A stretch of 64,000 nt of DNA from Auanema rhodensis (taxonomy: Eukaryota; Animalia; Nematoda). The DNA is taken from contig OZ059896.1 in NCBI GenBank assembly GCA_964057225.1, positions 11,718,001 to 11,782,000 on the forward strand, in the 5' to 3' direction. The translations under genes and the position numbers were made by a program. Position 1 is the stretch's first letter. The number at the start of each line of letters is the position of its first letter. Positions 31,939-64,000 of the stretch are shown in pieces. The notes beneath the pieces were generated by a model. It was given only the letters and a program-made list of their open reading frames with translations. It was not told the DNA's origin and ran no database searches.

Positions 31939-33036
31939 AAACTGAAACATTTAAATATTTTGTATTTTCTAAACCATTTCACTCCATCTCTTTTATTTAA
32001 TTCCATATTTTAAACAGTTTTATATTTTTACCACTATTTCATAATTTCATTTTTAAAATTTTTAATCATTAAAAAACATTTAAATTTCAATATTGTGATG
32101 CTCAAAAACTGAAACATTTAAATATTTTGTATTTTCTAAACCATTTCATTCCATCTGTTTTATTTAATTCCATATTTTAAACAATTTTATATTTCTACCA
32201 CTATTTCATAATTTCATTTTTCAAATTTTTAATCATTAAAAAACATTTAACTTTCAATATTGTGATGCTCAAAAACTGAAACATTTAAATATTTTGTATT
32301 TTCTAAATCATTTCACTCCATCTAGTTTATTTAATCCCATATTTTAAACAATTTTATATTTCTACCACTATTTCATAATTCCATTTTTTAAATTTTTAAT
32401 CTTTAAAAAACATTTAAATTTCAATATTGTGATGCTCAAAAACTGAAACATTTAAATATTTTTGTAACGGATGTCTATCCGGTTCTTTTCTGAGTGTACG
32501 TATTAACAAAAATACGAGGTGGCCAAAAGAAAAGAATTTATTTAGTAACTTCAAAAAAAAATAGTAATAACTTCAAAAATAAAACTGTGAACAAAAAGAT
32601 TTGAACTCCTTAGTTCAAAGATACAACACAAAAAAAATATAACCAAGAGACAACAATCAAACTAAAAGTAAAACTTAAATTTTCCGCAGTCCGAATATAC
32701 AGCCTCTCTCTATCCCCTCTACTAGTGAGTATGCCTCTATTTCATAAAAGTGCGCGAAAAGAGGAGTTATCGTGTGATTTCGCCATAATTGATAAGTTAA
32801 CTTAAAAGCTGCCGCGTTTACGACTATCTGGGTGTTTACGATATGATAATTTGTCACGTGATGACTTAAACCCTTTTTTATATTTCCTCTCAGAACTAAA
32901 TCTATTTCTATATCCTTTACATTTTGTACTTTCTAAACCATTTCACTCCATCTATTTTATGCAATTCCATATTTTAAACAATTTTATATTTCTACCACGA
33001 ATTCATAACTTCATTTTTTAAATTTTTAATCATTAA
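31939..33036 (-). repeat. Short inverted block of 167-bp satellite, interrupted by the Gypsy-B solo LTR
   Basis: Reverse-complement monomers at 31939-32462 and 32922-33036, more diverged than the neighbouring arrays. Confidence 0.95.
32463..32921 (-). mobile_element. Gypsy-B complete solo LTR (459 bp), 4-bp TSD TTTT
   Basis: tgtaacgg...tttaca, flanked by atatttt| and |ttttgta. The satellite resumes in register. Confidence 0.93.
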
Positions 33037-35101
33037 GGAAGCAGGAAGCTGAAAGGGTGTTATTCCAAACATGTAGAAGCTGGAACTGCTGAAGAATTCA
33101 AAAGTTTCATGAACAGGTAGTTTATTTTTATCTTTATCTTTTTCTTGACATCAACTTATTCTGACTTCTGTATAGGTCGCGAATTAACAACAAAACTGGA
33201 TCGGCTCTTGATTTACTAGAGGAGTTTACAAATATGAAGATGCTGCCTGCTGAAAATCTGGTGAATTCATGTGAACTGGAGAACGAGGATTAGCTTTCCG
33301 ATGATAAGCTACCGCATTTTGTGAGTATACATTCCGTTTCGTTTTGTTATCCTTTTTTGCAGAATGGCGTGAAATATTCCTGCCGAATGACTCAATGCAA
33401 GCTGATAGATGAGTTGCTTTACTACGTGAGTGATGTTGAAGAGCATTCTCTCCTTGCAGCCCTGGCGCAAAAAAATGATGGGTTTCCCATATCCAGTTTG
33501 AAAAAGCAGAGATATAGAAGCAACGACACCAGGGTGAGCCATTGTACATATTGTATATAACAGTTATTATCATCAGAGGCAAGGTGCAACAACGGTTAAG
33601 TCCGGAACGTTTACAAGCTTTGCTTCTCTTCTCTACTACACAATGCGTGTAGCACAGAAGAAGGATGTTTCTTTGAAGGATATGATAGGCTGAGGTGAAG
33701 TTTTCTCGATATTTTTTTATTTTCTCCATTTGCAGTGCATCAAAAAGATTGAAGTGAAAGTTGACATGATGACGAACGAGACATCGATGAACTCAATATT
33801 GCAGTTTGCTTATGAGACAAACAGAGCTTTTCGGATTCTGGAAACTTCTAATAATTTCAACAAGGAAGATCTATATATGTGTGCGAAGTCAATCTGCAAA
33901 TTGAAGAACATAGTTGAGTCAGTTAAGTATTCTTTGAAATAAAACTATATGATTTAAAATTACAGAGGTTGATTCAAGAGCGTATGCTACGAAAAATGCT
34001 CACGAAGATCCCAACGTTCTATTCCCTTTACCGGAAATTCAAAGATTTTGCAACATCTAGGTTGCAAAATATGATTGATTACTGCCCTCTATTGAAGGAC
34101 GAAAAGGTAAGTTATTTACATAATTTTTTTAAAGAAACATGTTGAAGGATAAAAGAAAATTTGTCGAAAGATGTCCGTGCTGTTATGTTATTTTCTGTTA
34201 TTCAACTTGGGGTTGAGAAGTGAAATTTTTTATAAAATTAAGTTGAAAGATGTAACGGATGCCCTCGATAGAGAATCTCTTGGTCCGCCCTTGATCAAGT
34301 TTGATTCAAAAAACGGTTATTACCTTTATGTGGTGATGAACCCCGAACTTAAAGAAACTTTTGAATTTTACATTGAGATGAGGTGTGAAAGGTTTGACAT
34401 GTACGTATAACAATTGATGTTTAAGACGGGAACTGTATCCGGAGATTCCTTATCTGTTTAGCCTTTCAAGTCACGACAATTTGAACAAGGCGATGGATTC
34501 TTTACCAGAAATGGAGGAAGAGATGAAAAGATCAATGGATATTCGAAGATCATATGTATTCGCTATAGATGCTTTCCAATCAGAAGAGGAAACCGTGAGA
34601 AAACTTTTAGCACAATGTCATGCCCAGGTCCAAGGGCATTCGATGCAGGTAACTTTTTAATGACAAAAATAATTGTAACAAGTTCAATAGACTAGGAAAA
34701 ACCACTACTCCTATTTGACCGAAGAGGCCGCTCTTTTATCCTTGGTAGGAGACACTGGTAGGAGCAGTGGAAATAGATCAGGTTTGCGTTACTTCAGCTC
34801 GGGGTTGCTTGGGAGGTTACCTCCTCATTAAGGGAGGACAATTGTTCGCGGACCAAGCGAGAAAGATCCTAAAAACATACAAGACCGATTTAATTTCTAA
34901 TGGGATTCATCCATCCTGGGGAGAATTCCCAAAATTAGTTAACTTCCCTCAAACAGACGCGCTACGTCGGGATGCCTCATTTCAACCCCCGGTGTGTAAA
35001 GGATATAGAAATAGATTTAGTTCTGAGAGGAAATATAAAAAGGGGTTTAAGTCATCAGGTGACAAATTATCATATCGTAAACACCCAGATAGTCGTAAAA
35101 A
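33037..35101 (+). pseudogene. Intron-containing tyrosine recombinase gene (Crypton-like), decayed and end-truncated
   Basis: GT-AG introns at about 33117-33175, 33321-33362, 33534-33576, 33695-33735, 33922-33965, 34107-34147/34155, 34383-34425 and 34649-34690. The spliced protein has LLFNLGLRSEIFYKIKLKDV, DSKNG, FYIEMRRELYPEIPYLF, SMDIRRSY and QGHSMQTRKNHY. Confidence 0.82.
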
Positions 35102-38100
35102 AGTGAAATGGTTTAGAAAATACAAAATATTTAAATGTTTCAGTTTTGATCATCACAATATTAAAATTTAAATGTTTTTTAATAATTAAAAATTTAAAAA
35201 ATAAAATTATGAAATGGTGATAAAAATATAAAATTGTTTAAAATATGGGATTAAATAAAATAGATGGAGTGAAATGGTTTAGAAAATACAAAATATTTAA
35301 ATGTTTCAGTTTTTGCTCATCACAATATTGAAATTTAAATGTTTTTTAATGATTGAAAATTTAAAAAATGAAATTATGAAATTGTGGTAGAAATATAAAA
35401 TTGTTTAAAATATGGAATTAAATAAAAGAGATGGAGTGAAATGGTTTAGAAAATACAAAATATTTAAATGTTTCAGTTTTTGATCATCACAATATTGAAA
35501 TTTAAATGTTTTTTAATGATTAAAAAATTAAAAAATGAAGTTATGAATTCGTGGTAGAAATATAAAATTGTTTAAAATATGGAATTAAATGAAAGAAATG
35601 GAGTGAAATGGTTTAGAAAATACAAAATATTTAAATGTTTCAGTTTTTGAGCATCACAATATTGAAATTTAAATGTTTTTTAATGATTAAAATTTAAAAA
35701 ATGAAATTATGGAATTGTGGTAGAAATATAAAATTGTTTAAAATATGGAATTAAATGAAAGAGATGGAGTGAAATGGTTTAGAAAATACAAAATATTTAA
35801 ATGTTTCAGTTTTTGAGCATCACAATATTGAAATTTAAATGTTTTTTAATGATTGAAAATTTAAAAAATGAAATTATGAAATTGTGGTAGAAATATAAAA
35901 TTGTTTATAATATGGAATTAAATAAAAGAGATGGAGTGAAATGGTTTAGAAAATACAAAATATTTAAATGTTTCAGTTTTTGATCATCACAATATTGAAA
36001 TTTAAATGTTTTTTAATGATTGAAAATTTAAAAAATGAAATTATGAAATTGTGGTAGAAATATAAAATTGTTTAAAATATGGAATTAAATAAAAGAGATG
36101 GAGTGAAATGGTTTAGAAAATACAAAATATTTAAATGTTTCAGTTTTTGATCATCACAATATTAAAATTTAAATGTTTTTTAATAATTAAAAATTTAAAA
36201 AATAAAATTATGAAATAGTGGTAAAAATATAAAATTGTTTAAAAAATGGAATTAAATAAAAGAGATGGAGTGAAATGGTTTAGAAAATATAAAATATTTA
36301 AATGTTTCAGTTTTTGAGCATCACAATATTGAAATTTAAATGTTTTTTAATGATTAAAAAATTAAAAAATGAAGTTATGAATTCGTGGTAGAAATATAAA
36401 ATTGTTTAAAATATGGAATTAAATAAAAGAGATGGAGTGAAATGGTTTAGAAAATACAAAATATTTAAATGTTTCAGTTTTTGAGCATCACAATATTGAA
36501 ATTTAAATGTTTTTTAATGATTGAAAATTTAAAAAATGAAATTATGAAATTGTGGTAGAATTAAAAAATTGTATAAAATATGAGATTAAATAAAATAGAT
36601 GGAGTTAAATGGTTTAGAAAATACAAAATATTTAAATGTTTCAGTTTTTGAGCATCACAATACTGAAATTTAAATGTTTTTCAATGATTGAAAATTCAAA
36701 AAATGAAATTATGAAATTGTGGTAGAATTAAAAAATTGTATAAAATATGGGATTAAATAAAAGAGATGGAGTGAAATGGTTTAGAAAATATAAAATATTT
36801 AAATGTTTCAGTTTTTGAGCATCACAATATTGAAATTTAAATGTTTTTTAATGATTAAAATTTGAAAAATGAAATTATGAAATTGTGGTAGAAATATAAA
36901 ATTGTTTAAAATATGGAATTAAATAAAAGAGATGGAGTGAAATGGTTTAGAAAATACAAAATATTTAAATGTTTCAGTTTTGATCATCACAATATTAAAA
37001 TTTAAATGTTTTTTAATAATTAAAAATTTAAAAAATAAAATTATGAAATAGTGGTAAAAATATAAAATTGTTTAAAATATGGGATTAAATAAAATAGATG
37101 GAGTGAAATGGTTTAGAAAATACAAAATATTTAAATGTTTCAGTTTTTGAGCATCACAATACTGAAATTTAAATGTTTTTCAATGATTAAAATATTAAAA
37201 AATGAAATTATGAAATAGTGGTAAAAATATAAAATTGTTTAAAATATGGGATTAAATAAAAGAGATGGAGTGAAATGGTTTAGAAAATACAAAATATTTA
37301 AATGTTTCAGTTTTGATCATCACAATATTAAAATTTATATGTTTTTTAATAATTAAAAAGTTAAAAAATAAGATTATGAAATAGTGGTAAAAATATAAAA
37401 TTGTTTAAAATATGGGATTAAATAAAATAGATGGAGTGAAATGGTTTAGAAAATACAAAATATTTAAATGTTTCAGTTTTTGAGCATCACAATATTGAAA
37501 TTTAAATGTTTTTTAATGATTAAAATTTAAAAAATGAAATTATGGAATTGTGGTAGAAATATAAAATGTTTAAAATATGGGATTAAATAAAATAGATGGA
37601 GTGAAATGGTTTAGAAAATACAAAATATTTAAATGTTTCAGTTTTTGAGCATCACAATACTGAAATTTAAATGTTTTTCAATGATTAAAATATTAAAAAA
37701 TGAAATTATGAAATTGTGGTAGAAATATAAAATTGTTTAAAATATGGAATTAAATAAAAGAGATAGAGTGAAATGGTTTAGAAAATACAAAATATTTAAA
37801 TGTTTCAGTTTTTGAGCATCACAATATTAAAATTTAAATGTTTTTTAATGATTAAAATTTGAAAAATGAAATTATGAAATTGTGGTAGAAATATAAAATT
37901 GTTTAAAATATGGAATTAAATAAAAGAGATGGAGTGAAATGGTTTAGAAAATACAAAATATTTAAATGTTTCAGTTTTGATCATCACAATATTAAAATTT
38001 AAATGTTTTTTAATAATTAAAAATTTAAAAAATAAAATTATGAAATAGTGGTAAAAATATAAAATTGTTTAAAATATGGGATTAAATAAAATAGATGGAG

Positions 38101-41100
38101 TGAAATGGTTTAGAAAATACAAAATATTTAAATGTTTCAGTTTTTGAGCATCACAATACTGAAATTTAAATGTTTTTCAATGATTAAAATATTAAAAAAT
38201 GAAATTATGAAATAGTGGTAAAAATATAAAATTGTTTAAAATATGGGATTAAATAAAAGAGATGGAGTGAAATGGTTTAGAAAATACAAAATATTTAAAT
38301 GTTTCAGTTTTGATCATCACAATATTAAAATTTATATGTTTTTTAATAATTAAAAAGTTAAAAAATAAGATTATGAAATAGTGGTAAAAATATAAAATTG
38401 TTTAAAATATGGGATTAAATAAAATAGATGGAGTGAAATGGTTTAGAAAATACAAAATATTTAAATGTTTCAGTTTTTGAGCATCACAATATTGAAATTT
38501 AAATGTTTTTTAATGATTAAAATTTAAAAAATGAAATTATGGAATTGTGGTAGAAATATAAAATGTTTAAAATATGGGATTAAATAAAATAGATGGAGTG
38601 AAATGGTTTAGAAAATACAAAATATTTAAATGTTTCAGTTTTTGAGCATCACAATACTGAAATTTAAATGTTTTTCAAAGATTAAAATATTAAAAAATGA
38701 AATTATGAAATTGTGGTAGAAATATAAAATTGTTTAAAATATGGAATTAAATAAAAGAGATAGAGTGAAATGGTTTAGAAAATACAAAATATTTAAATGT
38801 TTCAGTTTTTGAGCATCACAATATTAAAATTTAAATGTTTTTTAATGATTAAAAATTTGAAAAATGAAATTATGAAATTGTGGTAGAAATATAAAATTGT
38901 TTAAAATATGGAATTAAATAAAAGAGATGGAGTGAAATGGTTTAGAAAATATAAAATATTTAAATGTTTCAGTTTTTGATCATCACAATATTGAAATTTA
39001 AATGTTTTTTAATAATTAAAAATTTAAAAATTTAAAAAATAAAATTATGAAATAGTGGTAAAAATATAAAATTGTTTAAAATATGGGATTAAATAAAAGA
39101 GATGGAGTGAAATGGTTTAGAAAATACAAAATATTTAAATGTTTCAGTTTTTGAGCATCACAATATTGAAATTTAAATGTTTTTTAATGTTTAAAAATTT
39201 TAAGAATGAAATTATGAAATAGTGGTAAAAATATGAAATTGTTTAAAATATGAGATTAAATAAAATAGATGGAGTGAAATGGTTTAGAAAATACAAAATA
39301 TTTGAATGTTTCAGTTTTTGAGCATCACAATACTGAAATTTAAATGTTTTTCAATGATTAAAATATTAAAAAATGAAATTATGAAATAGTGGTAGAAATA
39401 TAAAATTGTTTAAAGAATAGAATTAAATGAAATCGATGTAGTGAAATGGTTTAGAAAATACAAAATATTTAAATGTTTCAGTTTTTGAGCATCACAATAT
39501 TGAAATTTAAATGTTTTTTAATGATTAAAAATTTGAAAAATGAAATTATGAAATAGTGGTAAAAATATAAAATTGTTTAAAAAATGGAATTAAATAAAAT
39601 AGATGTAGTGAAATGGTTTAGAAAATACAAAATATTTAAATGTTTCAGTTTTTGAGCATCACAATATTGAAATTTAAATGTTTTTTAATGATTAAAAATT
39701 TGAAAATTTAAAAAATGAAATTATGAAATAGTGGTAAAAATATAAAATTGTTTAAAATATGGGATTAAATAAAAGAGATGGAGTGAAATGGTTTAGAAAA
39801 TACAAAATATTTAAATGTTTCAGTTTTTGATCATCACAATATTGAAATTTAAATGTTTTTTAATAATTAAAAATTTAAGAATTTAAAAAATGAAATTATG
39901 AAATAGTGGTGAAAATATAAAATTGTTTAAAATATGGGATTAAATAAAAGAGATGGAGTGAAATGGTTTAGAAAAAGCAAAATATTTAAATGTTTCAGTT
40001 TTTGAGCATCACAGTATTCAAAATTTAAATGTTTTTTAATAATTAAAAAGTTAAAAAATAAGATTATGAAATAGTGGTAAAAATATAAAATTGTTTAAAA
40101 TATGGGATTAAATAAAATAGATGGAGTGAAATGGTTTAGAAAATACAAAATATTTAAATGTTTCAGTTTTTGAGCATCACAATATTGAAATTTAAATGTT
40201 TTTTAATGATTAAAAATTTGAAAACTTAAAAAATGAAATTATGAAATAGTGGTAAAAATATAAAATTGTTTAAAATATGGGATTAAATAAAAGAGATGGA
40301 GTGAAATGGTTTAGAAAATACAAAATATTTAAATGTTTCAGTTTTGATCATCACAATATTAAAATTTAAATGTTTTTTAATAATTAAAAAGTTAAAAAAT
40401 AAGATTATGAAATAGTGGTAAAAATATAAAATTGTTTAAAATATGGGATTAAATAAAATAGATGGAGTGAAATGGTTTAGAAAATACAAAATATTTAAAT
40501 GTTTCAGTTTTTGAGCATCACAATATTGAAATTTAAATGTTTTTTAATGATTAAAATTTAAAAAATGAAATTATGGAATTGTGGTAGAAATATAAAATGT
40601 TTAAAATATGGGATTAAATAAAATAGATGGAGTGAAATGGTTTAGAAAATACAAAATATTTAAATGTTTCAGTTTTTGAGCATCACAATACTGAAATTTA
40701 AATGTTTTTCAATGATTAAAATATTAAAAAATGAAATTATGAAATAGTGGTAAAAATATAAAATTGTTTAAAATATGGGATTAAATAAGATAGATGTAGT
40801 GAAATGGTTTAGAAAATACAAAATATTTAAATGTTTCAGTTTTTGAGCATCACAATATTGAAATTTAAATGTTTTTTAATGATTAAAAATTTGAAAACTT
40901 AAAAAATGAAATTATGAAATAGTGGTAAAAATATAAAATTGTTTAAAATATGGGATTAAATAAAAGAGATGGAGTGAAATGGTTTAGAAAATACAAAATA
41001 TTTAAATGTTTCAGTTTTGATCAACACAATATTAAAATTTATATGTTTTTTAATAATTAAAAAGTTAAAAAATAAGATTATGAAATAGTGGTAAAAATAT

Positions 41101-44100
41101 AAAATTGTTTAAAATATGGGATTAAATAAAATAGATGGAGTGAAATGGTTTAGAAAATACAAAATATTTAAATGTTTCAGTTTTTGAGCATCACAATATT
41201 GAAATTTAAATGTTTTTTAATGATTAAAATTTAAAAAATGAAATTATGGAATTGTGCTAGAAATATAAAATGTTTAAAATATGGGATTAAATAAAATAGA
41301 TGGAGTGAAATGGTTTAGAAAATACAAAATATTTAAATGTTTCAGTTTTTGAGCATCACAATACTGAAATTTAAATGTTTTTCAATGATTAAAATATTAA
41401 AAAATGAAATTATGAAATTGTGGTAGAAATATAAAATTGTTTAAAATATGGAATTAAATAAAAGAGATAGAGTGAAATGGTTTAGAAAATACAAAATATT
41501 TAAATGTTTCAGTTTTTGAGCATCACAATATTGAAATTTAAATGTTTTTTAATAATTAAAAATTTAAAAATTTAAAAAATAAAATTATGAAATAGTGGTA
41601 AAAATATAAAATTGTTTAAAATATGGGATTAAATAAAAGAGATGGAGTGAAATGGTTTAGAAAATACAAAATATTTAAATGTTTCAGTTTTTGAGCATCA
41701 CAATATTGAAATTTAAATGTTTTTTAATGTTTAAAAATTTTAAGAATGAAATTATGAAATAGTGGTAAAAATATAAAATTGTTTAAAATATGAGATTAAA
41801 TAAAAGAGATGGAGTGAAATGGTTTAGAAAATACAAAATATTTGAATGTTTCAGTTTTTGATCATCACAATATTGAAATTTAAATGTTTTTTAATAATTA
41901 AAAATTTAAAAATTTAAAAAATGAAATTATGAAATAGTGGTAAAAATATAAAATTGTTCAAAATATGGGATTAAATAAAAGAGATGGAGTGAAATGGTTT
42001 AGAAAATACAAAATATTTATATGTTTCAGTTCTTGAGCATCACAATATTGAAATTTAAATGTTTTTTAATGATTAAAAATTTGAAAAATGAAATTATGAA
42101 ATTGTGGTAGAAATATAAAATTGTTTAAAATATGGAATTAAATAAAAGAGATGGAGTGAAATGGTTTAGAAGATATAAAATATTTAAATGTTTCAGTTTT
42201 TGGTCATCACAATATTGAAATTTAAATGTTTTTTAATAATTAAAAATTTAAAAATTTAAAAAATAAAATTATGAAATAGTGGTAAAAATATAAAATTGTT
42301 TAAAATATGGGATTAAATAAAAGAGATGGAGTGAAATGGTTTAGAAAATACAAAATATTTAAATGTTTCAGTTTTTGAGCATCACAATATTGAAATTTAA
42401 ATGTTTTTTAATGTTTAAAAATTTTAAGAATGAAATTATGAAATAGTGGTAAAAATATAAAATTGTTTAAAATATGAGATTAAATAAAAGAGATGGAGTG
42501 AAATGGTTTAGAAAATACAAAATATTTGAATGTTTCAGTTTTTGATCATCACAATATTGAAATTTAAATGTTTTTTAATAATTAAAAATTTAAAAATTTA
42601 AAAAATGAAATTATGAAATAGTGGTAAAAATATAAAATTGTTCAAAATATGGGATTAAATAAAAGAGATGGAGTGAAATGGTTTAGAAAATACAAAATAT
42701 TTATATGTTTCAGTTCTTGAGCATCACAATATTGAAATTTAAATGTTTTTTAATGATTAAAAATTTGAAAAATGAAATTATGAAATTGTGGTAGAAATAT
42801 AAAATTGTTTAAAATATGGAATTAAATAAAAGAGATGGAGTGAAATGGTTTAGAAGATATAAAATATTTAAATGTTTCAGTTTTTGATCATCACAATATT
42901 GAAATTTAAATGTTTTTTAATAATTAAAAATTTAAAAATTTAAAAAATAAAATTATGAAATAGTGGTAAAAATATAAAATTGTTTAAAATATGGGATTAA
43001 ATAAAAGAGATGGAGTGAAATGGTTTAGAAAATACAAAATATTTAAATGTTTCAGTTTTTGAGCATCACAATATTGAAATTTAAATGTTTTTTAATGTTT
43101 AAAAATTTTAAGAATGAAATTATGAAATAGTGGTAAAAATATAAAATTGTTTAAAATATGAGATTAAATAAAAGAGATGGAGTGAAATGGTTTAGAAAAT
43201 ACAAAATATTTGAATGTTTCAGTTTTTGATCATCACAATATTGAAATTTAAATGTTTTTTAATAATTAAAAATTTAAAAATTTAAAAAATAAAATTATGA
43301 AATAGTGGTAAAAATATAAAATTGTTTAAAATATGGGATTAAATAAAAGAGATGGAGTGAAATGGTTTAGAAAATACAAAATATTTAAATGTTTCAGTTT
43401 TTGAGCATCACAATATTGAAATTTAAATGTTTTTTAATGTTTAAAAATTTTAAGAATGAAATTATGAAATAGTGGTAAAAATATAAAATTGTTCAAAATA
43501 TGGGATTAAATAAAAGAGATGGAGTGAAATGGTTTAGAAAATACAAAATATTTATATGTTTCAGTTCTTGAGCATCACAATATTGAAATTTAAATGTTTT
43601 TTAATGATTAAAATTTAAAAAATGAAATTATGGAATTGTGGTAGAAGTATAAAATTGTTTAAAATATGGAATTAAATGAAAGAGATGGAGTGAAATGGTT
43701 TAGAAAATACAAAATATTTAAATGTTTCAGTTTTTGAGCATCACAATATTGAAATTTAAATGTTTTTTAATGATTGAAAATTTAAAAAATGAAATTATGA
43801 AATTGTGGTAGAATTAAAAAATTGTATAAAATATGGGATTAAATAAAATAGATGGAGTTAAATGGTTTAGAAAATACAAAATATTTAAATGTTTCAGTTT
43901 TTGAGCATCACAATACTGAAATTTAAACGTTTTTCAATGATTAAAATATTAAAAAATGAAATTATGAAATAGTGGTAGAAATATAAAATTGTTTAAAAAA
44001 TGGAATTAAATGAAAGAGATGGAGTGAAAAAATGGTTTAGAAAATATAAAATATTTAAATGTTTCAGTTTTTGAGCATCACAATATTGAAATTTAAATGT

Positions 44101-47100
44101 TTTTTAATGATTAAAAATTTGAAAAATGAAATTATGAAATTGTGGTAGAAATATAAAATTGTTTAAAATATGGAATTAAATAAAAGAGATGGAGTGAAAT
44201 GGTTTAGAAAATACAAAATATTTAAATGTTTCAGTTTTGATCATCACAATATTAAAATTTAAATGTTTTTTAATGATTAAAAATTTGAAAAATGAAATTA
44301 TGAAATTGTGGTAGAAATATAAAATTGTTTAAAATATGGAATTAAATGAAAGAGATGGAGTGAAATGGTTTAGAAAATACAAAATATTTGAATGTTTCAG
44401 TTTTTGATCATCACAATATTGAAATTTAAATGTTTTTTAATAATTAAAAATTTAAAAAATAAAATTATGAAATAGTGGTAAAAATATAAAATTGTTTAAA
44501 ATATGGGATTAAATAAAATAGATGGAGTGAAATGGTTTAGAAAATACAAAATATTTGAATGTTTCAGTTTTTGATCATCACAATATTGAAATTTAAATGT
44601 TTTTTAATGATTGAAAATTTAAAAAATGAAATTATGAAATTGTGGTAGAATTAAAAAATTGTATAAAATATGGGATTAAATAAAATAGATAGAGTGAAAT
44701 GGTTTAGAAAATACAAAATATTTAAATGTTTCAGTTTTTGAGCATCACAATATTGAAATTTAAATGTTTTTTAATGATTAAAAATTTGAAAAATGAAATT
44801 ATGAAATTGTGGTAGAAATATAAAATTGTTTAAAATATGGAATTAAATAAAAGAGATGGAGTGAAATGGTTTAGAAAATACAAAATATTTAAATGTTTCA
44901 GTTTTGATCATCACAATATTAAAATTTAAATGTTTTTTAATGATTAAAAATTTGAAAAATGAAATTATGAAATTGTGGTAAAAATATAAAATTGTTTAAA
45001 ATATGGGATTAAATAAAATAGATGGAGTGAAATGGTTTAGAAAATACAAAATATTTGAATGTTTCAGTTTTTGATCATCACAATATTGAAATTTAAATGT
45101 TTTTTAATGATTGAAAATTTAAAAAATGAAATTATGAAATTGTGGTAGAATTAAAAAATTGTATAAAATATGGGATTAAATAAAATAGATAGAGTGAAAT
45201 GGTTTAGAAAATACAAAATATTTAAATGTTTCAGTTTTTGAGCATCACAATATTGAAATTTAAATGTTTTTTAATGATTAAAAATTTGAAAAATGAAATT
45301 ATGAAATTGTGGTAGAAATATAAAATTGTTTAAAATATGGAATTAAATAAAAGAGATGGAGTGAAATGGTTTAGAAAATACAAAATATTTAAATGTTTCA
45401 GTTTTGATCATCACAATATTAAAATTTAAATGTTTTTTAATAATTAAAAATTTAAAAAATAAAATTATGAAATAGTGGTAAAAATATAAAATTGTTTAAA
45501 ATATGGGATTAAATAAAATAGATGGAGTGAAATGGTTTAGAAAATACAAAATATTTAAATGTTTCAGTTTTTGAGCATCACAATATTGAAATTTAAATGT
45601 TTTTTAATGATTAAAAATTTGAAAAATGAAATTATGAAATTGTGGTAGAAATATAAAATTGTTTAAAATATGGAATTAAATAAAAGAGATGGAGTGAAAT
45701 GGTTTAGAAAATACAAAATATTTAAATGTTTCAGTTTTGATCATCACAATATTAAAATTTAAATGTTTTTTAATGATTAAAAATTTGAAAAATGAAATTA
45801 TGAAATTGTGGTAGAAATATAAAATTGTTTAAAATATGGAATTAAATGAAAGAGATGGAGTGAAATGGTTTAGAAAATACAAAATATTTGAATGTTTCAG
45901 TTTTTGATCATCACAATATTGAAATTTAAATGTTTTTTAATAATTAAAAATTTAAAAAATAAAATTATGAAATAGTGGTAAAAATATAAAATTGTTTAAA
46001 ATATGGGATTAAATAAAATAGATGGAGTGAAATGGTTTAGAAAATACAAAATATTTGAATGTTTCAGTTTTTGATCATCACAATATTGAAATTTAAATGT
46101 TTTTTAATGATTGAAAATTTAAAAAATGAAATTATGAAATTGTGGTAGAATTAAAAAATTGTATAAAATATGGGATTAAATAAAATAGATAGAGTGAAAT
46201 GGTTTAGAAAATACAAAATATTTAAATGTTTCAGTTTTTGAGCATCACAATATTGAAATTTAAATGTTTTTTAATGATTAAAAATTTGAAAAATGAAATT
46301 ATGAAATTGTGGTAGAAATATAAAATTGTTTAAAATATGGAATTAAATAAAAGAGATGGAGTGAAATGGTTTAGAAAATACAAAATATTTAAATGTTTCA
46401 GTTTTGATCATCACAATATTAAAATTTAAATGTTTTTTAATAATTAAAAATTTTAAAAATAAAATTATGAAATAGTGGTAAAAATATAAAATTGTTTAAA
46501 ATATGGGATTAAATAAAATAGATGGAGTGAAATGGTTTAGAAAATACAAAATATTTGAATGTTTCAGTTTTTGATCATCACAATATTGAAATTTAAATGT
46601 TTTTTAATGATTAAAAATTTGAAAAATGAAATTATGAAATTGTGGTAGAAATATAAAATTGTTTAAAATATGGAATTAAATAAAAGAGATGGAGTGAAAT
46701 GGTTTAGAAGATATAAAATATTTAAATGTTTCAGTTTTTGATCATCACAATATTGAAATTTAAATGTTTTTTAATAATTAAAAATTTAAAAATTTAAAAA
46801 ATAAAATTATGAAATAGTGGTAAAAATATAAAATTGTTTAAAATATGGGATTAAATAAAAGAGATGGAGTGAAATGGTTTAGAAAATACAAAATATTTAA
46901 ATGTTTCAGTTTTTGAGCATCACAATATTGAAATTTAAATGTTTTTTAATGTTTAAAAATTTTAAGAATGAAATTATGAAATAGTGGTAAAAATATAAAA
47001 TTGTTTAAAATATGAGATTAAATAAAAGAGATGGAGTGAAATGGTTTAGAAAATACAAAATATTTGAATGTTTCAGTTTTTGATCATCACAATATTGAAA

Positions 47101-50100
47101 TTTAAATGTTTTTTAATAATTAAAAATTTAAAAATTTAAAAATGAAATTATGAAATAGTGGTAAAAATATAAAATTGTTCAAAATATGGGATTAAATAAA
47201 AGAGATGGAGTGAAATGGTTTAGAAAATACAAAATATTCATATGTTTCAGTTCTTGAGCATCACAATATTGAAATTTAAATGTTTTTTAATGATTAAAAG
47301 TTTGAAAAATGAAATTATGAAATAGTGGTAAAAATATAAAATTGTTTAAAATATGAGATTAAATAAAAGAGATGGAGTGAAATGGTTTAGAAAATACAAA
47401 ATATTTGAATGTTTCAGTTTTTGATCATCACAATATTGAAATTTAAATGTTTTTTAATAATTAAAAATTTAAAAATTTAAAAAATGAAATTATGAAATAG
47501 TGGTAAAAATATAAAATTGTTCAAAATATGGGATTAAATAAAAGAGATGGAGTGAAATGGTTTAGAAAATACAAAATATTTATATGTTTCAGTTCTTGAG
47601 CATCACAATATTGAAATTTAAATGTTTTTTAATGATTAAAAGTTTGAAAAATGAAATTATGAAATTGTGGTAGAAATATAAAATTGTTTAAAATATGGAA
47701 TTAAATAAAAGAGATGGAGTGAAATGGTTTAGAAGATATAAAATATTTAAATGTTTCAGTTTTTGATCATCACAATATTGAAATTTAAATGTTTTTTAAT
47801 AATTAAAAATTTAAAAATTTAAAAAATAAAATTATGAAATAGTGGTAAAAATATAAAATTGTTTAAAATATGGGATTAAATAAAAGAGATGGAGTGAAAT
47901 GGTTTAGAAAATACAAAATATTTAAATGTTTCAGTTTTTGAGCATCACAATATTGAAATTTAAATGTTTTTTAATGTTTAAAAGTTTTAAGAATGAAATT
48001 ATGAAATAGTGGTAAAAATATAAAATTGTTTAAAATATGAGATTAAATAAAAGAGATGGAGTGAAATGGTTTAGAAAATACAAAATATTTGAATGTTTCA
48101 GTTTTTGATCATCACAATATTGAAATTTAAATGTTTTTTAATAATTAAAAATTTAAAAATTTAAAAAATAAAATTATGAAATAGTGGTAAAAATATAAAA
48201 TTGTTTGAAATATGGGATTAAATAAAAGAGATGGAGTGAAATGGTTTAGAAAATACAAAATATTTAAATGTTTCAGTTCTTGAGCATCACAATATTGAAA
48301 TTTAAATGTTTTTTAATGATTAAAATTTAAAAAATGAAATTATGGAATTGTGGTAGAAGTATAAAATTGTTTAAAATATGGAATTAAATGAAAGAGATGG
48401 AGTGAAATGGTTTAGAAAATACAAAATATTTAAATGTTTCAGTTTTTGAGCATCACAATATTGAAATTTAAATGTTTTTTAATGATTGAAAATTTAAAAA
48501 ATGAAATTATGAAATTGTGGTAGAATTAAAAAATTGTATAAAATATGGGATTAAATAAAATAGATGGAGTTAAATGGTTTAGAAAATACAAAATATTTAA
48601 ATGTTTCAGTTTTTGAGCATCACAATACTGAAATTTAAACGTTTTTCAATGATTAAAATATTAAAAAATGAAATTATGAAATAGTGGTAGAAATATAAAA
48701 TTGTTTAAAAAATGGAATTAAATAAAAGAGATGGAGTGAAAAAATGGTTTAGAAAATATAAAATATTTAAATGTTTCAGTTTTTGAGCATCACAATATTG
48801 AAATTTAAATGTTTTTTAATGATTAAAAATTTGAAAAATGAAATTATGAAATTGTGGTAGAAATATAAAATTGTTTAAAATATGGAATTAAATAAAAGAG
48901 ATGGAGTGAAATGGTTTAGAAAATACAAAATATTTAAATGTTTCAGTTTTGATCATCACAATATTAAAATTTAAATGTTTTTTAATGATTAAAAATTTGA
49001 AAAATGAAATTATGAAATTGTGGTAGAAATATAAAATTGTTTAAAATATGGAATTAAATGAAAGAGATGGAGTGAAATGGTTTAGAAAATACAAAATATT
49101 TGAATGTTTCAGTTTTTGATCATCACAATATTGAAATTTAAATGTTTTTTAATAATTAAAAATTTAAAAATTTAAAAAATAAAATTATGAAATAGTGGTA
49201 AAAATATAAAATTGTTTAAAATATGGGATTAAATAAAAGAGATGGAGTGAAATGGTTTAGAAAATACAAAATATTTAAATGTTTCAGTTCTTGAGCATCA
49301 CAATATTGAAATTTAAATGTTTTTTAATGATTAAAATTTAAAAAATGAAATTATGGAATTGTGGTAGAAGTATAAAATTGTTTAAAATATGGAATTAAAT
49401 GAAAGAGATGGAGTGAAATGGTTTAGAAAATACAAAATATTTAAATGTTTCAGTTTTTGAGCATCACAATATTGAAATTTAAATGTTTTTTAATGATTGA
49501 AAATTTAAAAAATGAAATTATGAAATTGTGGTAGAATTAAAAAATTGTATAAAATATGGGATTAAATAAAAGAGATGGAGTGAAATGGTTTAGAAAATAC
49601 AAAATATTTAAATGTTTCAGTTTTTGAGCATCACAATATTGAAATTTAAATGTTTTTTAATGTTTAAAAGTTTTAAGAATGAAATTATGAAATAGTGGTA
49701 AAAATATAAAATTGTTTAAAATATGAGATTAAATAAAAGAGATGGAGTGAAATGGTTTAGAAAATACAAAATATTTGAATGTTTCAGTTTTTGATCATCA
49801 CAATATTGAAATTTAAATGTTTTTTAATGATTGAAAATTTAAAAAATGAAATTATGAAATTGTGGTAGAATTAAAAAATTGTATAAAATATGGGATTAAA
49901 TAAAATAGATGGAGTTAAATGGTTTAGAAAATACAAAATATTTAAATGTTTCAGTTTTTGAGCATCACAATACTGAAATTTAAACGTTTTTCAATGATTA
50001 AAATATTAAAAAATGAAATTATGAAATAGTGGTAGAAATATAAAATTGTTTAAAAAATGGAATTAAATAAAAGAGATGGAGTGAAAAAATGGTTTAGAAA

Positions 50101-53100
50101 ATATAAAATATTTAAATGTTTCAGTTTTTGAGCATCACAATATTGAAATTTAAATGTTTTTTAATGATTAAAAATTTGAAAAATGAAATTATGAAATTGT
50201 GGTAGAATTAAAAAATTGTATAAAATATGGGATTAAATAAAATAGATGGAGTTAAATGGTTTAGAAAATACAAAATATTTAAATGTTTCAGTTTTTGAGC
50301 ATCACAATACTGAAATTTAAACGTTTTTCAATGATTAAAATATTAAAAAATGAAATTATGAAATAGTGGTAGAAATATAAAATTGTTTAAAAAATGGAAT
50401 TAAATAAAAGAGATGGAGTGAAAAAATGGTTTAGAAAATATAAAATATTTAAATGTTTCAGTTTTTGAGCATCACAATATTGAAATTTAAATGTTTTTTA
50501 ATGATTAAAAATTTGAAAAATGAAATTATGAAATTGTGGTAGAAATATAAAATTGTTTAAAATATGGAATTAAATAAAAGAGATGGAGTGAAATGGTTTA
50601 GAAAATACAAAATATTTAAATGTTTCAGTTTTGATCATCACAATATTAAAATTTAAATGTTTTTTAATGATTAAAAATTTGAAAAATGAAATTATGAAAT
50701 TGTGGTAGAAATATAAAATTGTTTAAAATATGGAATTAAATGAAAGAGATGGAGTGAAATGGTTTAGAAAATACAAAATATTTGAATGTTTCAGTTTTTG
50801 ATCATCACAATATTGAAATTTAAATGTTTTTTAATAATTAAAAATTTAAAAAATAAAATTATGAAATAGTGGTAAAAATATAAAATTGTTTAAAATATGG
50901 GATTAAATAAAATAGATGGAGTGAAATGGTTTAGAAAATACAAAATATTTGAATGTTTCAGTTTTTGATCATCACAATATTGAAATTTAAATGTTTTTTA
51001 ATGATTGAAAATTTAAAAAATGAAATTATGAAATTGTGGTAGAATTAAAAAATTGTATAAAATATGGGATTAAATAAAATAGATAGAGTGAAATGGTTTA
51101 GAAAATACAAAATATTTAAATGTTTCAGTTTTTGAGCATCACAATATTGAAATTTAAATGTTTTTTAATGATTAAAAATTTGAAAAATGAAATTATGAAA
51201 TTGTGGTAGAAATATAAAATTGTTTAAAATATGGAATTAAATAAAAGAGATGGAGTGAAATGGTTTAGAAAATACAAAATATTTAAATGTTTCAGTTTTG
51301 ATCATCACAATATTAAAATTTAAATGTTTTTTAATAATTAAAAATTTAAAAAATAAAATTATGAAATAGTGGTAAAAATATAAAATTGTTTGAAATATGG
51401 GATTAAATAAAATAGATGGAGTGAAATGGTTTAGAAAATACAAAATATTTGAATGTTTCAGTTTTTGATCATCACAATATTGAAATTTAAATGTTTTTTA
51501 ATGATTAAAAATTTGAAAAATGAAATTATGAAATTGTGGTAGAAATATAAAATTGTTTAAAATATGGAATTAAATGAAAGAGATGGAGTGAAATGGTTTA
51601 GAAAATACAAAATATTTAAATGTTTCAGTTTTGATCATCACAATATTAAAATTTAAATGTTTTTTAATAATTAAAAATTTAAAAAATAAGATTATGAAAT
51701 AGTGGTAAAAATATAAAATTGTTTAAAATATGGGATTAAATAAAATAGATGGAGTGAAATGGTTTAGAAAATACAAAATATTTGAATGTTTCAGTTTTTG
51801 AGCATCACAATATTAAAATTTAAATGTTTTTTAATGATTGAAAATTTAAAAAATAAAATTATGAAATTGTGGTAGAATTAAAAAATTGTATAAAATATGG
51901 GATTAAATAAAATAGATGGAGTGAAATGGTTTAGAAAATACAAAATATTTAAATGTTTCAGTTTTTGAGCATCACAATACTGAAATTTAAATGTTTTTCA
52001 ATGATTAAAATATTAAAAAATGAAATTATGAAATAGTGGTAGAAATATAAAATTGTTTAAAATATGGAATTAAATAAAAGAGATGGAGTGAAATGGTTTA
52101 GAAAAAACAAAATATTTGAATGTTTCAGTTTTTGATCATCACAATATTGAAATTTAAATGTTTTTTAATGATTGAAAATTTAAAAAATGAAATTATGAAA
52201 TTGTGGTAGAATTAAAAAATTGTATAAAATATGGGATTAAATAAAATAGATAGAGTGAAATGGTTTAGAAAATACAAAATATTTAAATGTTTCAGTTTTT
52301 GATCATCACAATATTGAAATTTAAATGTTTTTTAATGATTAAAAATTTGAAAAATGAAATTATGAAATTGTGGTAGAAATATAAAATTGTTTAAAATATG
52401 GAATTAAATGAAAGAGATGGAGTGAAATGGTTTAGAAAATACAAAATATTTAAATGTTTCAGTTTTGATCATCACAATATTAAAATTTAAATGTTTTTTA
52501 ATAATTAAAAATTTAAAAAATAAGATTATGAAATAGTGGTAAAAATATAAAATTGTTTAAAATATGGGATTAAATAAAATAGATGGAGTGAAATGGTTTA
52601 GAAAATACAAAATATTTGAATGTTTCAGTTTTTGAGCATCACAATATTAAAATTTAAATGTTTTTTAATGATTGAAAATTTAAAAAATGAAATTATGAAA
52701 TTGTGGTAGAATTAAAAAATTGTATAAAATATGGGATTAAATAAAATAGATGGAGTGAAATGGTTTAGAAAATACAAAATATTTAAATGTTTCAGTTTTT
52801 GAGCATCACAATACTGAAATTTAAATGTTTTTCAATGATTGAAATATTAAAAAATGAAATTATGAAATAGTGGTAAAAATATAAAATTGTTTAAAATATG
52901 GGATTAAATAAAAGAGATGGAGTGAAATGGTTTAGAAAATACAAAATATTTGAATGTTTCAGTTTTTGATCATCACAATATTGAAATTTAAATGTTTTTT
53001 AATAATTAAAAATTTAAAAATTTAAAAAATGAAATTATGAAATAGTGGTAAAAATATAAAATTGTTCAAAATATGGGATTAAATAAAAGAGATGGAGTGA

Positions 53101-56100
53101 AATGGTTTAGAAAATACAAAATATTTATATGTTTCAGTTCTTGAGCATCACAATATTGAAATTTAAATGTTTTTTAATGATTAAAATTTAAAAAATGAAA
53201 TTATGGAATTGTGGTAGAAGTATAAAATTGTTTAAAATATGGAATTAAATGAAAGAGATGGAGTGAAATGGTTTAGAAAATACAAAATATTTAAATGTTT
53301 CAGTTTTTGAGCATCACAATATTGAAATTTAAATGTTTTTTAATGATTGAAAATTTAAAAAATGAAATTATGAAATTGTGGTAGAATTAAAAAATTGTAT
53401 AAAATATGGGATTAAATAAAATAGATGGAGTTAAATGGTTTAGAAAATACAAAATATTTAAATGTTTCAGTTTTTGAGCATCACAATACTGAAATTTAAA
53501 CGTTTTTCAATGATTAAAATATTAAAAAATGAAATTATGAAATAGTGGTAGAAATATAAAATTGTTTAAAAAATGGAATTAAATAAAAGAGATGGAGTGA
53601 AAAAATGGTTTAGAAAATATAAAATATTTAAATGTTTCAGTTTTTGAGCATCACAATATTGAAATTTAAATGTTTTTTAATGATTAAAAATTTGAAAAAT
53701 GAAATTATGAAATTGTGGTAGAAATATAAAATTGTTTAAAATATGGGATTAAATAAAATAGATGGAGTGAAATGGTTTAGAAAATACAAAATATTTAAAT
53801 GTTTCAGTTTTGATCATCACAATATTAAAATTTAAATGTTTTTTAATGATTAAAAATTTGAAAAATGAAATTATGAAATTGTGGTAGAATTAAAAAATTG
53901 TTTAAAATATGGAATTAAATAAAAGAGATGGAGTGAAATGGTTTAGAAAATACAAAATATTTAAATGTTTCAGTTTTGATCATCACAATATTAAAATTTA
54001 AATGTTTTTTAATAATTAAAAATTTAAAAAATAAAATTATGAAATAGTGGTAAAAATATAAAATTGTTTAAAATATGGGATTAAATAAAATAGATGGAGT
54101 GAAATGGTTTAGAAAATACAAAATATTTGAATGTTTCAGTTTTTGATCATCACAATATTGAAATTTAAATGTTTTTTAATGATTGAAAATTTAAAAAATG
54201 AAATTATGAAATTGTGGTAGAATTAAAAAATTGTATAAAATATGGGATTAAATAAAATAGATAGAGTGAAATGGTTTAGAAAATACAAAATATTTAAATG
54301 TTTCAGTTTTTGAGCATCACAATACTGAAATTTAAATGTTTTTCAATGATTAAAATATTAAAAAATGAAATTATGAAATAGTGGTAGAAATATAAAATTG
54401 TTTAAAATATGGAATTAAATAAAAGAGATGGAGTGAAATGGTTTAGAAAAAACAAAATATTTGAATGTTTCAGTTTTTGATCATCACAATATTGAAATTT
54501 AAATGTTTTTTAATGATTGAAAATTTAAAAAATGAAATTATGAAATTGTGGTAGAATTAAAAAATTGTATAAAATATGGGATTAAATAAAATAGATAGAG
54601 TGAAATGGTTTAGAAAATACAAAATATTTAAATGTTTCAGTTTTTGAGCATCACAATATTGAAATTTAAATGTTTTTTAATGATTAAAAATTTGAAAAAT
54701 GAAATTATGAAATTGTGGTAGGAATATAAAATTGTTTAAAATATGGGATTAAATAAAATAGATGGAGAGAAATGGTTTAGAAAATACAAAATATTTGAAT
54801 GTTTCAGTTTTTGATCATCACAATATTGAAATTTAAATGTTTTTTAATGATTAAAAATTTGAAAAATGAAATTATGAAATTGTGGTAGAAATATAAAATT
54901 GTTTAAAATATGGAATTAAATGAAAGAGATGGAGTGAAATGGTTTAGAAAATACAAAATATTTAAATGTTTCAGTTTTGATCATCACAATATTAAAATTT
55001 AAATGTTTTTTAATAATTAAAAATTTAAAAAATAAGATTATGAAATAGTGGTAAAAATATAAAATTGTTTAAAATATGGGATTAAATAAAATAGATGGAG
55101 TGAAATGGTTTAGAAAATACAAAATATTTGAATGTTTCAGTTTTTGAGCATCACAATATTAAAATTTAAATGTTTTTTAATGATTGAAAATTTAAAAAAT
55201 GAAATTATGAAATTGTGGTAGAATTAAAAAATTGTATAAAATATGGGATTAAATAAAATAGATGGAGTGAAATGGTTTAGAAAATACAAAATATTTAAAT
55301 GTTTCAGTTTTTGAGCATCACAATACTGAAATTTAAATGTTTTTCAATGATTAAAATATTAAAAAATGAAATTATGAAATAGTGGTAAAAATATAAAATT
55401 GTTTAAAATATGGGATTAAATAAAAGAGATGGAGTGAAATGGTTTAGAAAATATAAAATATTTAAATGTTCCAGTTTTTGAGCATCACAATATTGAAATT
55501 TAAGTGTTTTTTAATGATTAAAAATTTTAAGAATGAAATTATGAAATAGTGGTAAAAATATAAAATTGTTTAAAATATGGGATTAAATAAAAGAGATGGA
55601 GTGAAATGGTTTAGAAAATATAAAATATTTAAATGTTTCAGTTTTTGATCATCACAATATTGAAATTTAAATGTTTTTTAATGATTAAAAATTTGAAAAC
55701 TTAAAAAATGAAATTATGAAATAGTGGTAAAAATATAAAATTGTTTAAAATATGGGATTAAATAAAATAGATGTAGTGAAATGGTTTAGAAAATACAAAA
55801 TATTTAAATGTTTCAGTTTTTGAGCATCACAATATTGAAATTTAAATGTTTTTTAATGATTAAAAATTTGAAAACTTAAAAAATGAAATTATGAAATAGT
55901 GGTAAAAATATAAAATTGTTTAAAATATGGGATTAAATAAAAGAGATGGAGTGAAATGGTTTAGAAAATACAAAATATTTAAATGTTTCAGTTTTTGAGC
56001 ATCACAATATTAAAATTTAAATGTTTTTTAATGATTAAAAATTTGAAAAATGAAATTATGAAATTGTGGTAGAAATATAAAATTGTTTAAAATATGGAAT

Positions 56101-62100: not shown

Positions 62101-64000
62101 TTTAATGATTAAAAATTTTAAGAATGAAATTATGAAATAGTGGTAAAAATATAAAATTGTTTAAAATATGGGATTAAATAAAAGAGATGGAGTGAAATGG
62201 TTTAGAAAATATAAAATATTTAAATGTTCCAGTTTTTGAGCATCACAATATTGAAATTCAAGTGTTTTTTAATGATTAAAAATTTTAAGAATGAAATTAT
62301 GAAATAGTGGTAAAAATATAAAATTGTTTAAAATATGGGATTAAATAAAAGAGATGGAGTGAAATGGTTTAGAAAATACAAAATATTTAAATGTTTCAGT
62401 TTTTGAGCATCACAATACTGAAATTTAAATGTTTTTTAATGATTAAAAATTTGAAAAATGAAATTATGAAATAGTGGTAAAAATATAAAATTGTATAAAA
62501 TATGGGATTAAATAAAATAGATGGAGTGAAATGGTTTAGAAAATACAAAATATTTAAATGTTTCAGTTTTTGAGCATCACAATATTAAAATTTAAGTGTT
62601 TTTTAATGATTAAAAATTTGAAAAATGAAATTATGAAATAGTGGTAAAAATATAAAATTGTTTAAAATATGGGATTAAATAAAAGAGATGGAGTGAAATG
62701 GTTTAGAAAATACAAAATATTTAAATGTTTCAGTTTTTGAGCATCACAATACTGAAATTTAAATGTTTTTCAATGATTAAAATAATAAAAAATGAAATTA
62801 TGAAATTGTGGTAGAAATATAAAATTGTTTAAAATATGGGATTAAATAAAATAGATGGAGTGAAATGGTTTAGAAAATACAAAATATTTGAATGTTTCAG
62901 TTTTTGATCATCACAATATTGAAATTTAAATGTTTTTTAATGATTAAAAATTTGAAAAATGAAATTATGAAATTGTGGTAGAAATATAAAATTGTTTAAA
63001 ATATGGAATTAAATGAAAGAGATGGAGTGAAATGGTTTAGAAAATACAAAATATTTAAATGTTTCAGTTTTGATCATCACAATATTAAAATTTAAATGTT
63101 TTTTAATAATTAAAAATTTAAAAAATAAGATTATGAAATAGTGGTAAAAATATAAAATTGTTTAAAATATGGGATTAAATAAAATAGATGGAGTGAAATG
63201 GTTTAGAAAATACAAAATATTTGAATGTTTCAGTTTTTGAGCATCACAATATTAAAATTTAAATGTTTTTTAATGATTGAAAATTTAAAAAATGAAATTA
63301 TGAAATTGTGGTAGAATTAAAAAATTGTATAAAATATGGGATTAAATAAAATAGATGGAGTGAAATGGTTTAGAAAATACAAAAAATTTAAATGTTTCAG
63401 TTTTTGAGCATCACAATACTGAAATTTAAATGTTTTTCAATGATTAAAATATTAAAAAATGAAATTATGAAATAGTGGTAAAAATATAAAATTGTTTAAA
63501 ATATGGGATTAAATAAAAGAGATGGAGTGAAATGGTTTAGAAAATATAAAATATTTAAATGTTCCAGTTTTTGAGCATCACAATATTGAAATTTAAGTGT
63601 TTTTTAATGATTAAAAATTTTAAGAATGAAATTATGAAATAGTGGTAAAAATATAAAATTGTTTAAAATATGGGATTAAATAAAAGAGATGGAGTGAAAT
63701 GGTTTAGAAAATACAAAATATTTAAATGTTTCAGTTTTTGATCATCACAATATTGAAATTTAAATGTTTTTTAATAATTAAAAATTTAAGAATTTAAAAA
63801 ATGAAATTATGAAATAGTGGTGAAAATATAAAATTGTTTAAAATATGGGATTAAATAAAAGAGATGGAGTGAAATGGTTTAGAAAAAACAAAATATTTAA
63901 ATGTTTCAGTTTTTGAGCATCACAGTATTCAAAATTTAAATGTTTTTTAATGATGAAAAATTTAAGAATGAAATTATGAAATAGTGGTAGAATTAAAAAA
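35102..64000 (+). repeat. 167-bp satellite sub-family C, about 170 monomers, uninterrupted, with 166- and 175-bp variants and local higher-order repeats
   Basis: Consensus gaaattatgaaatagtggtagaaatataaaattgtttaaaatatggaattaaataaaagagatggagtgaaatggtttagaaaatacaaaatatttaaatgtttcagtttttgatcatcacaatattgaaatttaaatgttttttaatgattaaaaatttaaaaaat. Variants gggatt, gtaaaaa and an 8-bp duplication. Confidence 0.99.

Follow-up and report, generated by a model that had tools for sequence, protein, structure and literature searches.

A doubly truncated pseudogene in Auanema rhodensis satellite DNA belongs to a low-copy gene family with SET, RING and putative recombinase-derived domains

The stretch of the Auanema rhodensis genome analysed here (64,000 nucleotides, C4:11,718,001-11,782,000; hereafter the window) is made up nearly entirely of a 167-bp satellite, within which lies the remnant of a heavily spliced gene (33037-34831). 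We found that this remnant is a fixed pseudogene, truncated at both its 5' and its 3' end, and that it belongs to a gene family represented by six to seven loci and additional fragments in the 181 Mb of genome searched. The full product of the family probably comprises, in order, a SET domain, a Cys-rich/zinc-finger region, a helical region of ~230 aa, a domain of ~170 aa that we infer to be derived from a Crypton-type tyrosine recombinase, and a C3HC4 RING finger. Our best explanation, advanced tentatively and at a little under even confidence, is that the window holds an inactivated copy, truncated at both ends, of a low-copy SET/zinc-finger/recombinase-derived/RING unit that is mobile now or was mobile until recently.

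To delineate the window gene, junctions were called by enumerating GT..AG pairs that keep the reading frame open. This gave nine exons and eight GT-AG introns of 41-59 nt, the same eight that a first-pass annotation of the sequence had described. All exons lie on the plus strand. Exon 0 (33037..33116) is the latter half of a CPxC...C...H zinc-finger-like exon that is cut at 33037; it is homologous to an exon with KEKRLCPLC...RNH in the copies on chromosomes C8, C3, C7 and C6. Intron 1 (33117-33175; 59 nt, phase 2) separates it from exon 1 (33176..33320), which contains an in-frame TAG at 33291-33293. After intron 2 (33321-33362; 42 nt, phase 0) comes exon 2 (33363..33533), which is 41-48% identical to the paralogue exons and has the junction ...R/RQG in common with them. 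Intron 3 (33534-33576; 43 nt, phase 0) precedes exon 3 (33577..33694), which ends in GGC TGA G, with the TGA at 33691-33693. Exons 4 (33736..33921) and 5 (33966..34106) are each preceded by a phase 0 intron, intron 4 (33695-33735; 41 nt) and intron 5 (33922-33965; 44 nt, with the donor GTTAAG at 33922), respectively. Exon 6 (34156..34382), which follows intron 6 (34107-34155; 49 nt, phase 0), is the most conserved exon and carries the candidate box I, GLRSE, and the candidate beta-hairpin Lys, in SKNG. Exon 7 (34426..34648), which follows intron 7 (34383-34425; 43 nt, phase 2), contains the YLF patch, MDIRR and GHS. Intron 8 (34649-34690; 42 nt, phase 0) leads to the remnant of exon 8 (34691..34831), which holds the candidate nucleophile Tyr and reaches a stop codon at 34829-31 without a RING finger.

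This arrangement is not peculiar to the window. A tblastn search of the genome with the window exons recovered them in unchanged order, separated by short introns, on C3, C6 and C7 and twice on C8. Individual paralogue exons are 26-59% identical in protein (mostly 35-57%). In these paralogues, 40-57% identical in protein, the splice junctions coincide codon for codon, and the intron sequences are not alignable. A 1.25-kb contig from a second organism (L037; Logan run ERR11476990) likewise contains exons 2-7 with the same junctions. Because order and junctions recur in diverged paralogues and in a second organism, the exon structure is beyond chance, and the introns proposed in the first-pass annotation have the support from paralogues that they called for. 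Extra introns occur within exon 7 in the C8 and C3 copies and within exon 6 in the C6 copy.

When the genome was searched at the protein level with exons 2, 6, 7 and 8 and a SET exon, every query led to one small set of loci. In addition to the window copy on C4, these are C3:10.65 Mb, C6:9.96 Mb, C7:10.70 Mb, C8:26.634 Mb and C8:26.706 Mb, together with a partial copy at C3:10.897 Mb and fragments of exons 6-7 on C8 whose DNA is 91-93% identical to the window and which lie in a duplicated unit of ~10.6 kb. It had been supposed from the window alone that the gene has a long N-terminal region and a C-terminal extension. Further coding sequence is indeed present, and in the fuller paralogues it takes the form of a SET domain, Cys-rich/zinc-finger motifs and a C3HC4 RING. 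The SET domain lies upstream of the zinc-finger exon in the C8, C3, C7 and C6 copies, as does a Cys-rich, post-SET-like exon. Scores against PF00856 (SET) were 32.9 bits for the C8 copy, 29.1 for C7 and 26.5 for C6, compared with a cut-off of 22.4, and the NH...N and ELxFDY motifs were found. At the other end of the gene, the exon with the candidate Tyr continues in paralogues into a C3HC4 RING; the C8 copy scored 23.3 bits against PF00097 (cut-off 21), and its complete C3HC4 pattern becomes visible once the exons are spliced.

Every near-full-length copy that we examined, with one exception, is damaged, and divergence among the copies is deep. The C3 copy is interrupted by stop codons and by two insertions; in the C7 copy, part of exon 6 is deleted and GHS is gone; exon 4 of the C8:26.706 copy is frameshifted; and in the C8:26.634 copy the acceptor at the exon 4/5 junction is changed from AG to AA, whereas a neighbouring 98% fragment retains AG. 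The C6 copy alone has clean GT-AG junctions throughout its ~16 introns, and in our splice model its reading frame stays open for 771 aa, beginning at the SET exon and taking in the RING. A search for intact copies and their ends, as proposed in the first-pass annotation, produced one apparently intact copy, on C6, and neither transposon termini nor near-identical full copies. The existence of that apparently intact copy makes the recombinase claim testable. Comparing the C3 copy with C8:26.706 gives identities of 87, 90 and 77% at codon positions 1, 2 and 3, respectively. Third positions have therefore diverged at about double the rate of the first two, which indicates that this pair underwent purifying selection for a time after the split. 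The two insertions in the copy at C3 10.65 Mb measure ~1.8 kb (L027 1907-3753) and ~1.4 kb (4959-6401), and the second interrupts exon 7 immediately ahead of the box II Arg.

An exon 6 profile run against 1.84 billion representative proteins yielded two genuine relatives, P0001 and P0003, both from one Logan run; the matches P0002 and P0004, which are repetitive proteins, were judged spurious. An exon 7 profile had no match among 5.8 billion proteins. The second organism (ERR11476990; L036 537-911 and L037) has two diverged family members. P0003, a relative protein from this run that extends from exon 6 to the box II Arg, is without the exon 6/7 intron and has an extra intron within exon 7.

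The window copy has two lesions, the TAG in exon 1 and, where exon 3 ends, a stop with a frameshift. At the latter position a sense codon precedes the donor in relatives (the junction was compared in six copies), and a single inserted T is probably the best reading of both the stop and the frameshift. Reading is open only for exons 4-5 and for exons 6-8, which bear the motifs. DNA contigs of run sets X1, X4 and X7, which come from three independent studies, span both lesions with zero differences, and we therefore conclude that the lesions are not assembly errors. The 5' end of the gene is lost: the frame starts in the middle of an exon at 33037, at a junction with satellite, and the upstream half of the zinc finger and all of the SET exons are missing. 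The 3' end is lost as well, as similarity to relatives stops 18 codons into exon 8, at ~34744, and the RING part is missing. The lesions and the cut ends together establish that the window copy is a fixed, truncated pseudogene, and by itself it is presumably capable of nothing. Its earlier description as a copy of a divergent recombinase gene holds for the intron-bearing structure and the conserved residue set and fails in so far as it implied a working gene. What makes the window copy useful is that it marks the family and a rearrangement breakpoint in the satellite.

The case for a tyrosine recombinase origin of the middle domain begins with its conserved residues. Counting codons in the translations placed the Arg of GLRSE at 34216-18, the Lys of DSKNG at 34309-11, the Arg of MDIRR at 34544-46, the His of GHS at 34637-39 and the Tyr of KNHY at 34706-08, which agrees with the positions first assigned to them. 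R, K, R, H and Y are retained in all aligned members, down to 37% identity, except for a change of the first Arg to Gln in the broken C3 copy. The first His of the set, which had been noted as replaced in the window, is Met in every member. The most conserved segments are GLRSE-I/V...D-V; SKNG with a beta-strand-like YVV; YLF; M-D/N-I/V-R-R-x-Y; and GHS, with the Tyr nine residues on. The spacing from His to Tyr in XerD is also 9 residues.

Searches by language-model features pointed in the same direction. With P0003 as the query, PF00589 clusters made up 38 of 100 neighbours, and Integrase_1 and protelomerase were also found. With exon 6 of the C8 copy, which is 41-44% identical to P0003, the first match scored 0.96, and the neighbours were protelomerase, DUF3435, PF00589, NDC10_II, DUF3504 (0.88) and Integrase_2, all of recombinase-clan fold, with one outlier. 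Pfam, PHROGs and NCBIfam were queried with single exons and P0003. In the PHROG scan (38,880 families), the sole family listed for window exon 6 was an integrase, a weak match at E 0.23. Aligning an exon 6 profile with DIRS recombinases by hhalign gave a top local alignment that sets box I on box I, at a non-significant E of 0.38. The secondary structure of a poor AlphaFold model of P0003 consists of two helices, a beta-hairpin with SKN at the turn and a further helix. Taken together, these observations make it likely that the middle domain has a recombinase-derived fold, and the domain appears to keep a near-complete active site (Arg, Lys, Arg, His and Tyr, with Met in place of the first His).

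Other results weigh against this assignment. The first-pass annotation had looked to an integrase-fold match of the spliced protein, and Pfam, PDB searches, hhalign, hmmsearch and AlphaFold returned nothing significant; indeed, no single result in support of a recombinase is statistically significant. The AlphaFold model of P0003 (124 aa, from an 8-row alignment) has a pLDDT of 45 and is unreliable, and a Foldseek search of the PDB with it found nothing meaningful. Neither single exons nor P0003 gave a recombinase match in Pfam or anything significant in NCBIfam. Six-frame scans of the genome with PF00589 recovered only DIRS-type open reading frames (ORFs) and not the family, and those with PF12012 did not match the family either, giving one unrelated weak match (E 1.5). 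No recombinase was found by searching PDB sequences with exon 6 and exon 7 profiles. The spliced family profile matched a profile of 31 DIRS recombinase sequences no better than 150 column-shuffled controls did (hhalign, z approximately -0.9), exon profiles in hhalign and hmmsearch against DIRS recombinases stayed at noise level, and exon 7 alone had no language-model match.

Alternatively, the middle domain could be unrelated to tyrosine recombinases and its motif set coincidental; the family would then encode a lineage-specific SET-RING protein and the window would hold a pseudogene fragment of it. The profile, HMM and structure tests are all negative or uninformative and to that extent favour such a reading. 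We nevertheless consider it improbable, as two members that are ~41% identical both draw almost solely neighbours of the recombinase clan, the one weak match among the PHROG families is an integrase, and no positions of the family are more conserved than the five signature residues, which stand in the right order and with the right spacing. Far less probable still is that the window holds a fragment of a DIRS/PAT-type retroelement recombinase. DIRS/PAT elements follow the same R...K...HxxR...H/W...Y logic and are present in the same genome, which contains at least 31 intronless recombinase ORFs of this type (300-438 aa, PF00589 E down to 3e-12; L038-L047 on C1, C3, C4, C6 and C8), with best matches in the strongylids Ancylostoma, Cooperia and Oesophagostomum and in Plectus. 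However, these ORFs match PF00589 (E 1e-12), lie behind RNase H-like ORFs and are coupled to reverse transcriptase (RT), RNase H and a methyltransferase-like ORF, whereas the window gene family has at least eight introns, no PF00589 match and no similarity to the genome's DIRS ORFs. The distinction first drawn between the window gene and intronless DIRS/PAT recombinases is thus borne out in this genome. No RT or RNase H lies next to any copy inspected, and the RT genes of the window are parts of separate BEL/Pao and Gypsy elements, whose integrases are of the DDE type, in line with the earlier statement that the gene has no RT partner. Because no RT or RNase H adjoins the gene, we conclude that it is not a DIRS/PAT element. 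A working Crypton-like recombinase gene or element in the window is likewise very improbable. Exons 6-8 are open and their splice signals are intact, but the exon 1 TAG and the exon 3 frameshift and TGA, present in the DNA of three studies, refute it; moreover, the copy lacks its 5' exons and its 3' RING, and the stretch is absent from the examined run guessed to be RNA.

The more difficult question is whether the family is a mobile element or a set of host genes. Several features of its genomic setting are consistent with mobility. The C6 copy is a 3.7-kb insert with little besides the gene (L028 3753-7497; C6 ~9,960,250-9,964,000), placed in an array of tRNA-Gly(GCC) and a 231-bp repeat. It is flanked on both sides by the same ~65-nt stretch of the array unit, which is not a short repeat, and its 3' edge carries a 144-nt duplicate of exon 7 (L028 3759-3902). 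Copies are found on five chromosomes, in or beside arrays of different kinds: the 167-bp satellite in the window, the tRNA-Gly/231-bp array on C6, a 409-bp array after the C7 copy (L029 6078-10000) and a 197-bp array before the C8:26.706 copy (L033 1359-9427). Arrays of 176-bp (L034 1-3285) and 167/334-bp units (L034 6863-10000) also lie by family copies. Similarity between the C3 and C8 copies starts at the acceptor of the SET exon and ends at the stop codon. The damage seen in all copies but one, and their deep divergence, are likewise what a transposable element might show. On our preferred explanation, the unit would be a single-gene mobile element, now or until recently; its recombinase-like domain would integrate a circular form of it into tandem arrays, and SET and RING would act on local chromatin. 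The window copy may have reached the 167-bp satellite by such an insertion and may then have been broken at 33037 by an inversion or a fold-back rearrangement and decayed.

Mobility also has results against it. The association with arrays, seen at four of seven loci, may reflect no more than the base rate of array-adjoining loci in the genome, and the six to seven loci showed no terminal repeats, short target duplications or near-identical full-length copies. Among the listed runs, none recorded as RNA contains the stretch; of three runs guessed to be RNA, the one examined yielded no contigs there, and all three had a word share of 0.00. The ~16 introns together with SET and RING resemble a host chromatin gene, and the SET/zinc-finger/recombinase-like/RING architecture looks as much like that of a chromatin protein as that of a transposase. 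The family could instead be an ordinary (domesticated) host family with a recombinase-derived middle that was spread by segmental duplication in repeat-rich DNA; the window would then hold a pseudogene fragment, and the domain would be a DNA- or chromatin-binding module, as DUF3504 is in ZMYM and QRICH1. We regard such a history as possible, if on balance unlikely. The chromatin-type SET and RING, the many conserved introns, the faster divergence of third codon positions between the C3 and C8 copies, the common local duplications in the C8 cluster and the transposon termini not found all fit it, and Crypton-derived domains fused to others in host regulators provide a precedent (PMC3212892). 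It sits less well with near-full-length copies that are all damaged but one, with the C6 copy as a discrete insert within a tRNA array, with copies in unrelated arrays on different chromosomes, with catalytic residues that are kept, unlike in the DUF3504 genes, and with the absence of the family from annotated nematode proteomes (two relatives of the exon 6 profile among the proteins searched, both from one other run). The more specific proposal that the family is an undescribed eukaryotic mobile element, in which one heavily spliced gene for a SET/zinc finger/Crypton-type recombinase/RING ligase would integrate into tRNA arrays and satellites, is in our view possible, though less likely than not.

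Cryptons, the eukaryotic elements that encode only a tyrosine recombinase (Goodwin 2003; Kojima & Jurka 2011), offer the closest comparison. They and their domesticated DUF3504 derivatives have been described with no nematode case (PMC3212892), and a 2014 survey of nematodes reported no Crypton in Nematoda (PMC4157794). The family resembles Cryptons in its intron-bearing gene, its tyrosine-recombinase-like residue set, the lack of RT, its low copy number with mostly defective copies and the lack of terminal inverted repeats, and its language-model neighbours include the Crypton-related DUF3435 and DUF3504. It differs in that it has no significant sequence match, in that its gene also encodes SET and RING, domains that the papers searched do not describe for Cryptons, and has ~16 introns, and in that it has no defined termini or short direct repeats. 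The DUF3504 genes (WOC/ZMYM2-4, QRICH1, KCTD1 and KIAA1958) are similar to the family in that a recombinase-derived domain sits in a long, intron-rich, multi-domain protein with zinc fingers and a chromatin-regulator flavour. However, DUF3504 domains have lost the catalytic Tyr and the second Arg (PMC3212892), whereas the family keeps R, K, R, H and Y, is not matched by PF12012 and consists mostly of pseudogene copies in tandem arrays. The family may be a new variation on the Crypton or domesticated-recombinase theme, with a putative fold.

A different parallel is SETMAR, a single host gene in primates in which a SET domain is fused to a mariner DDE transposase. Both join a SET methyltransferase to a transposon-derived DNA-processing domain, but the partner in the family is recombinase-like, a RING is added and there are several dispersed copies. 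A literature search found nothing relevant on fusions of recombinases to RING or SET domains. Should the middle domain prove to be a true recombinase with its active site nearly intact, the family would constitute the first report of a Crypton-like lineage in nematodes, and the first case found in which one protein combines a tyrosine recombinase with both a histone-methyltransferase domain and a RING finger. Such a protein would offer an element, or a host, a way to link DNA strand exchange with the marking of chromatin at tandem repeats.

The remnant in the window is bracketed by a 105-bp inverted repeat, whose left arm (32817..32921) is 98% reverse-complementary to the right arm (34995..35099). 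These two arms are the only copies of the repeat in the whole genome. Between the left arm and the cut 5' end of the gene lies an inverted piece of satellite of about 116 nt (32922..33036, minus strand), which is 90-96% complementary to monomers at 35179-36462. An X4 contig (33007-34224) crosses the junction at 33037 without differences, with 30 letters to the left of the junction compared with the 31 required for a bridge. The segment between the gene remnant and the right arm (34745..34994) is single-copy in the genome, as is 32718-32816, and the ORF at 34767-35168 had no Pfam match. Neither the satellite monomer nor the 105-bp inverted repeat was found near other family copies. Short-read contigs of X1 and X4 continue from 32816 through the 105-bp repeat into 34994 in reverse complement. 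Either the segment between the arms also exists in the opposite orientation, or the join is an artefact of the assembly graph, the repeat being longer than the assembler word.

The 167-bp satellite array that follows the remnant (35102..64000, plus strand) comprises ~172 copies according to Tandem Repeats Finder. Within the window, the satellite is broken up by three retroelements: a BEL/Pao element with an intact ORF of 1643 aa and a DDE integrase (2263-7194), a pair of ORFs for a Gypsy-type RT/RNase H and a DDE integrase (11159-15208), and a gag-protease remnant on the minus strand (29586-31179). On C8, amid satellite arrays and family fragments, we also observed an interstitial (GGCTTA)x21 (L034 4173-4301; C8 ~26.78 Mb), ~150 kb from the end of C8, which we take to be the nematode telomere repeat, (GGCTTA)n.

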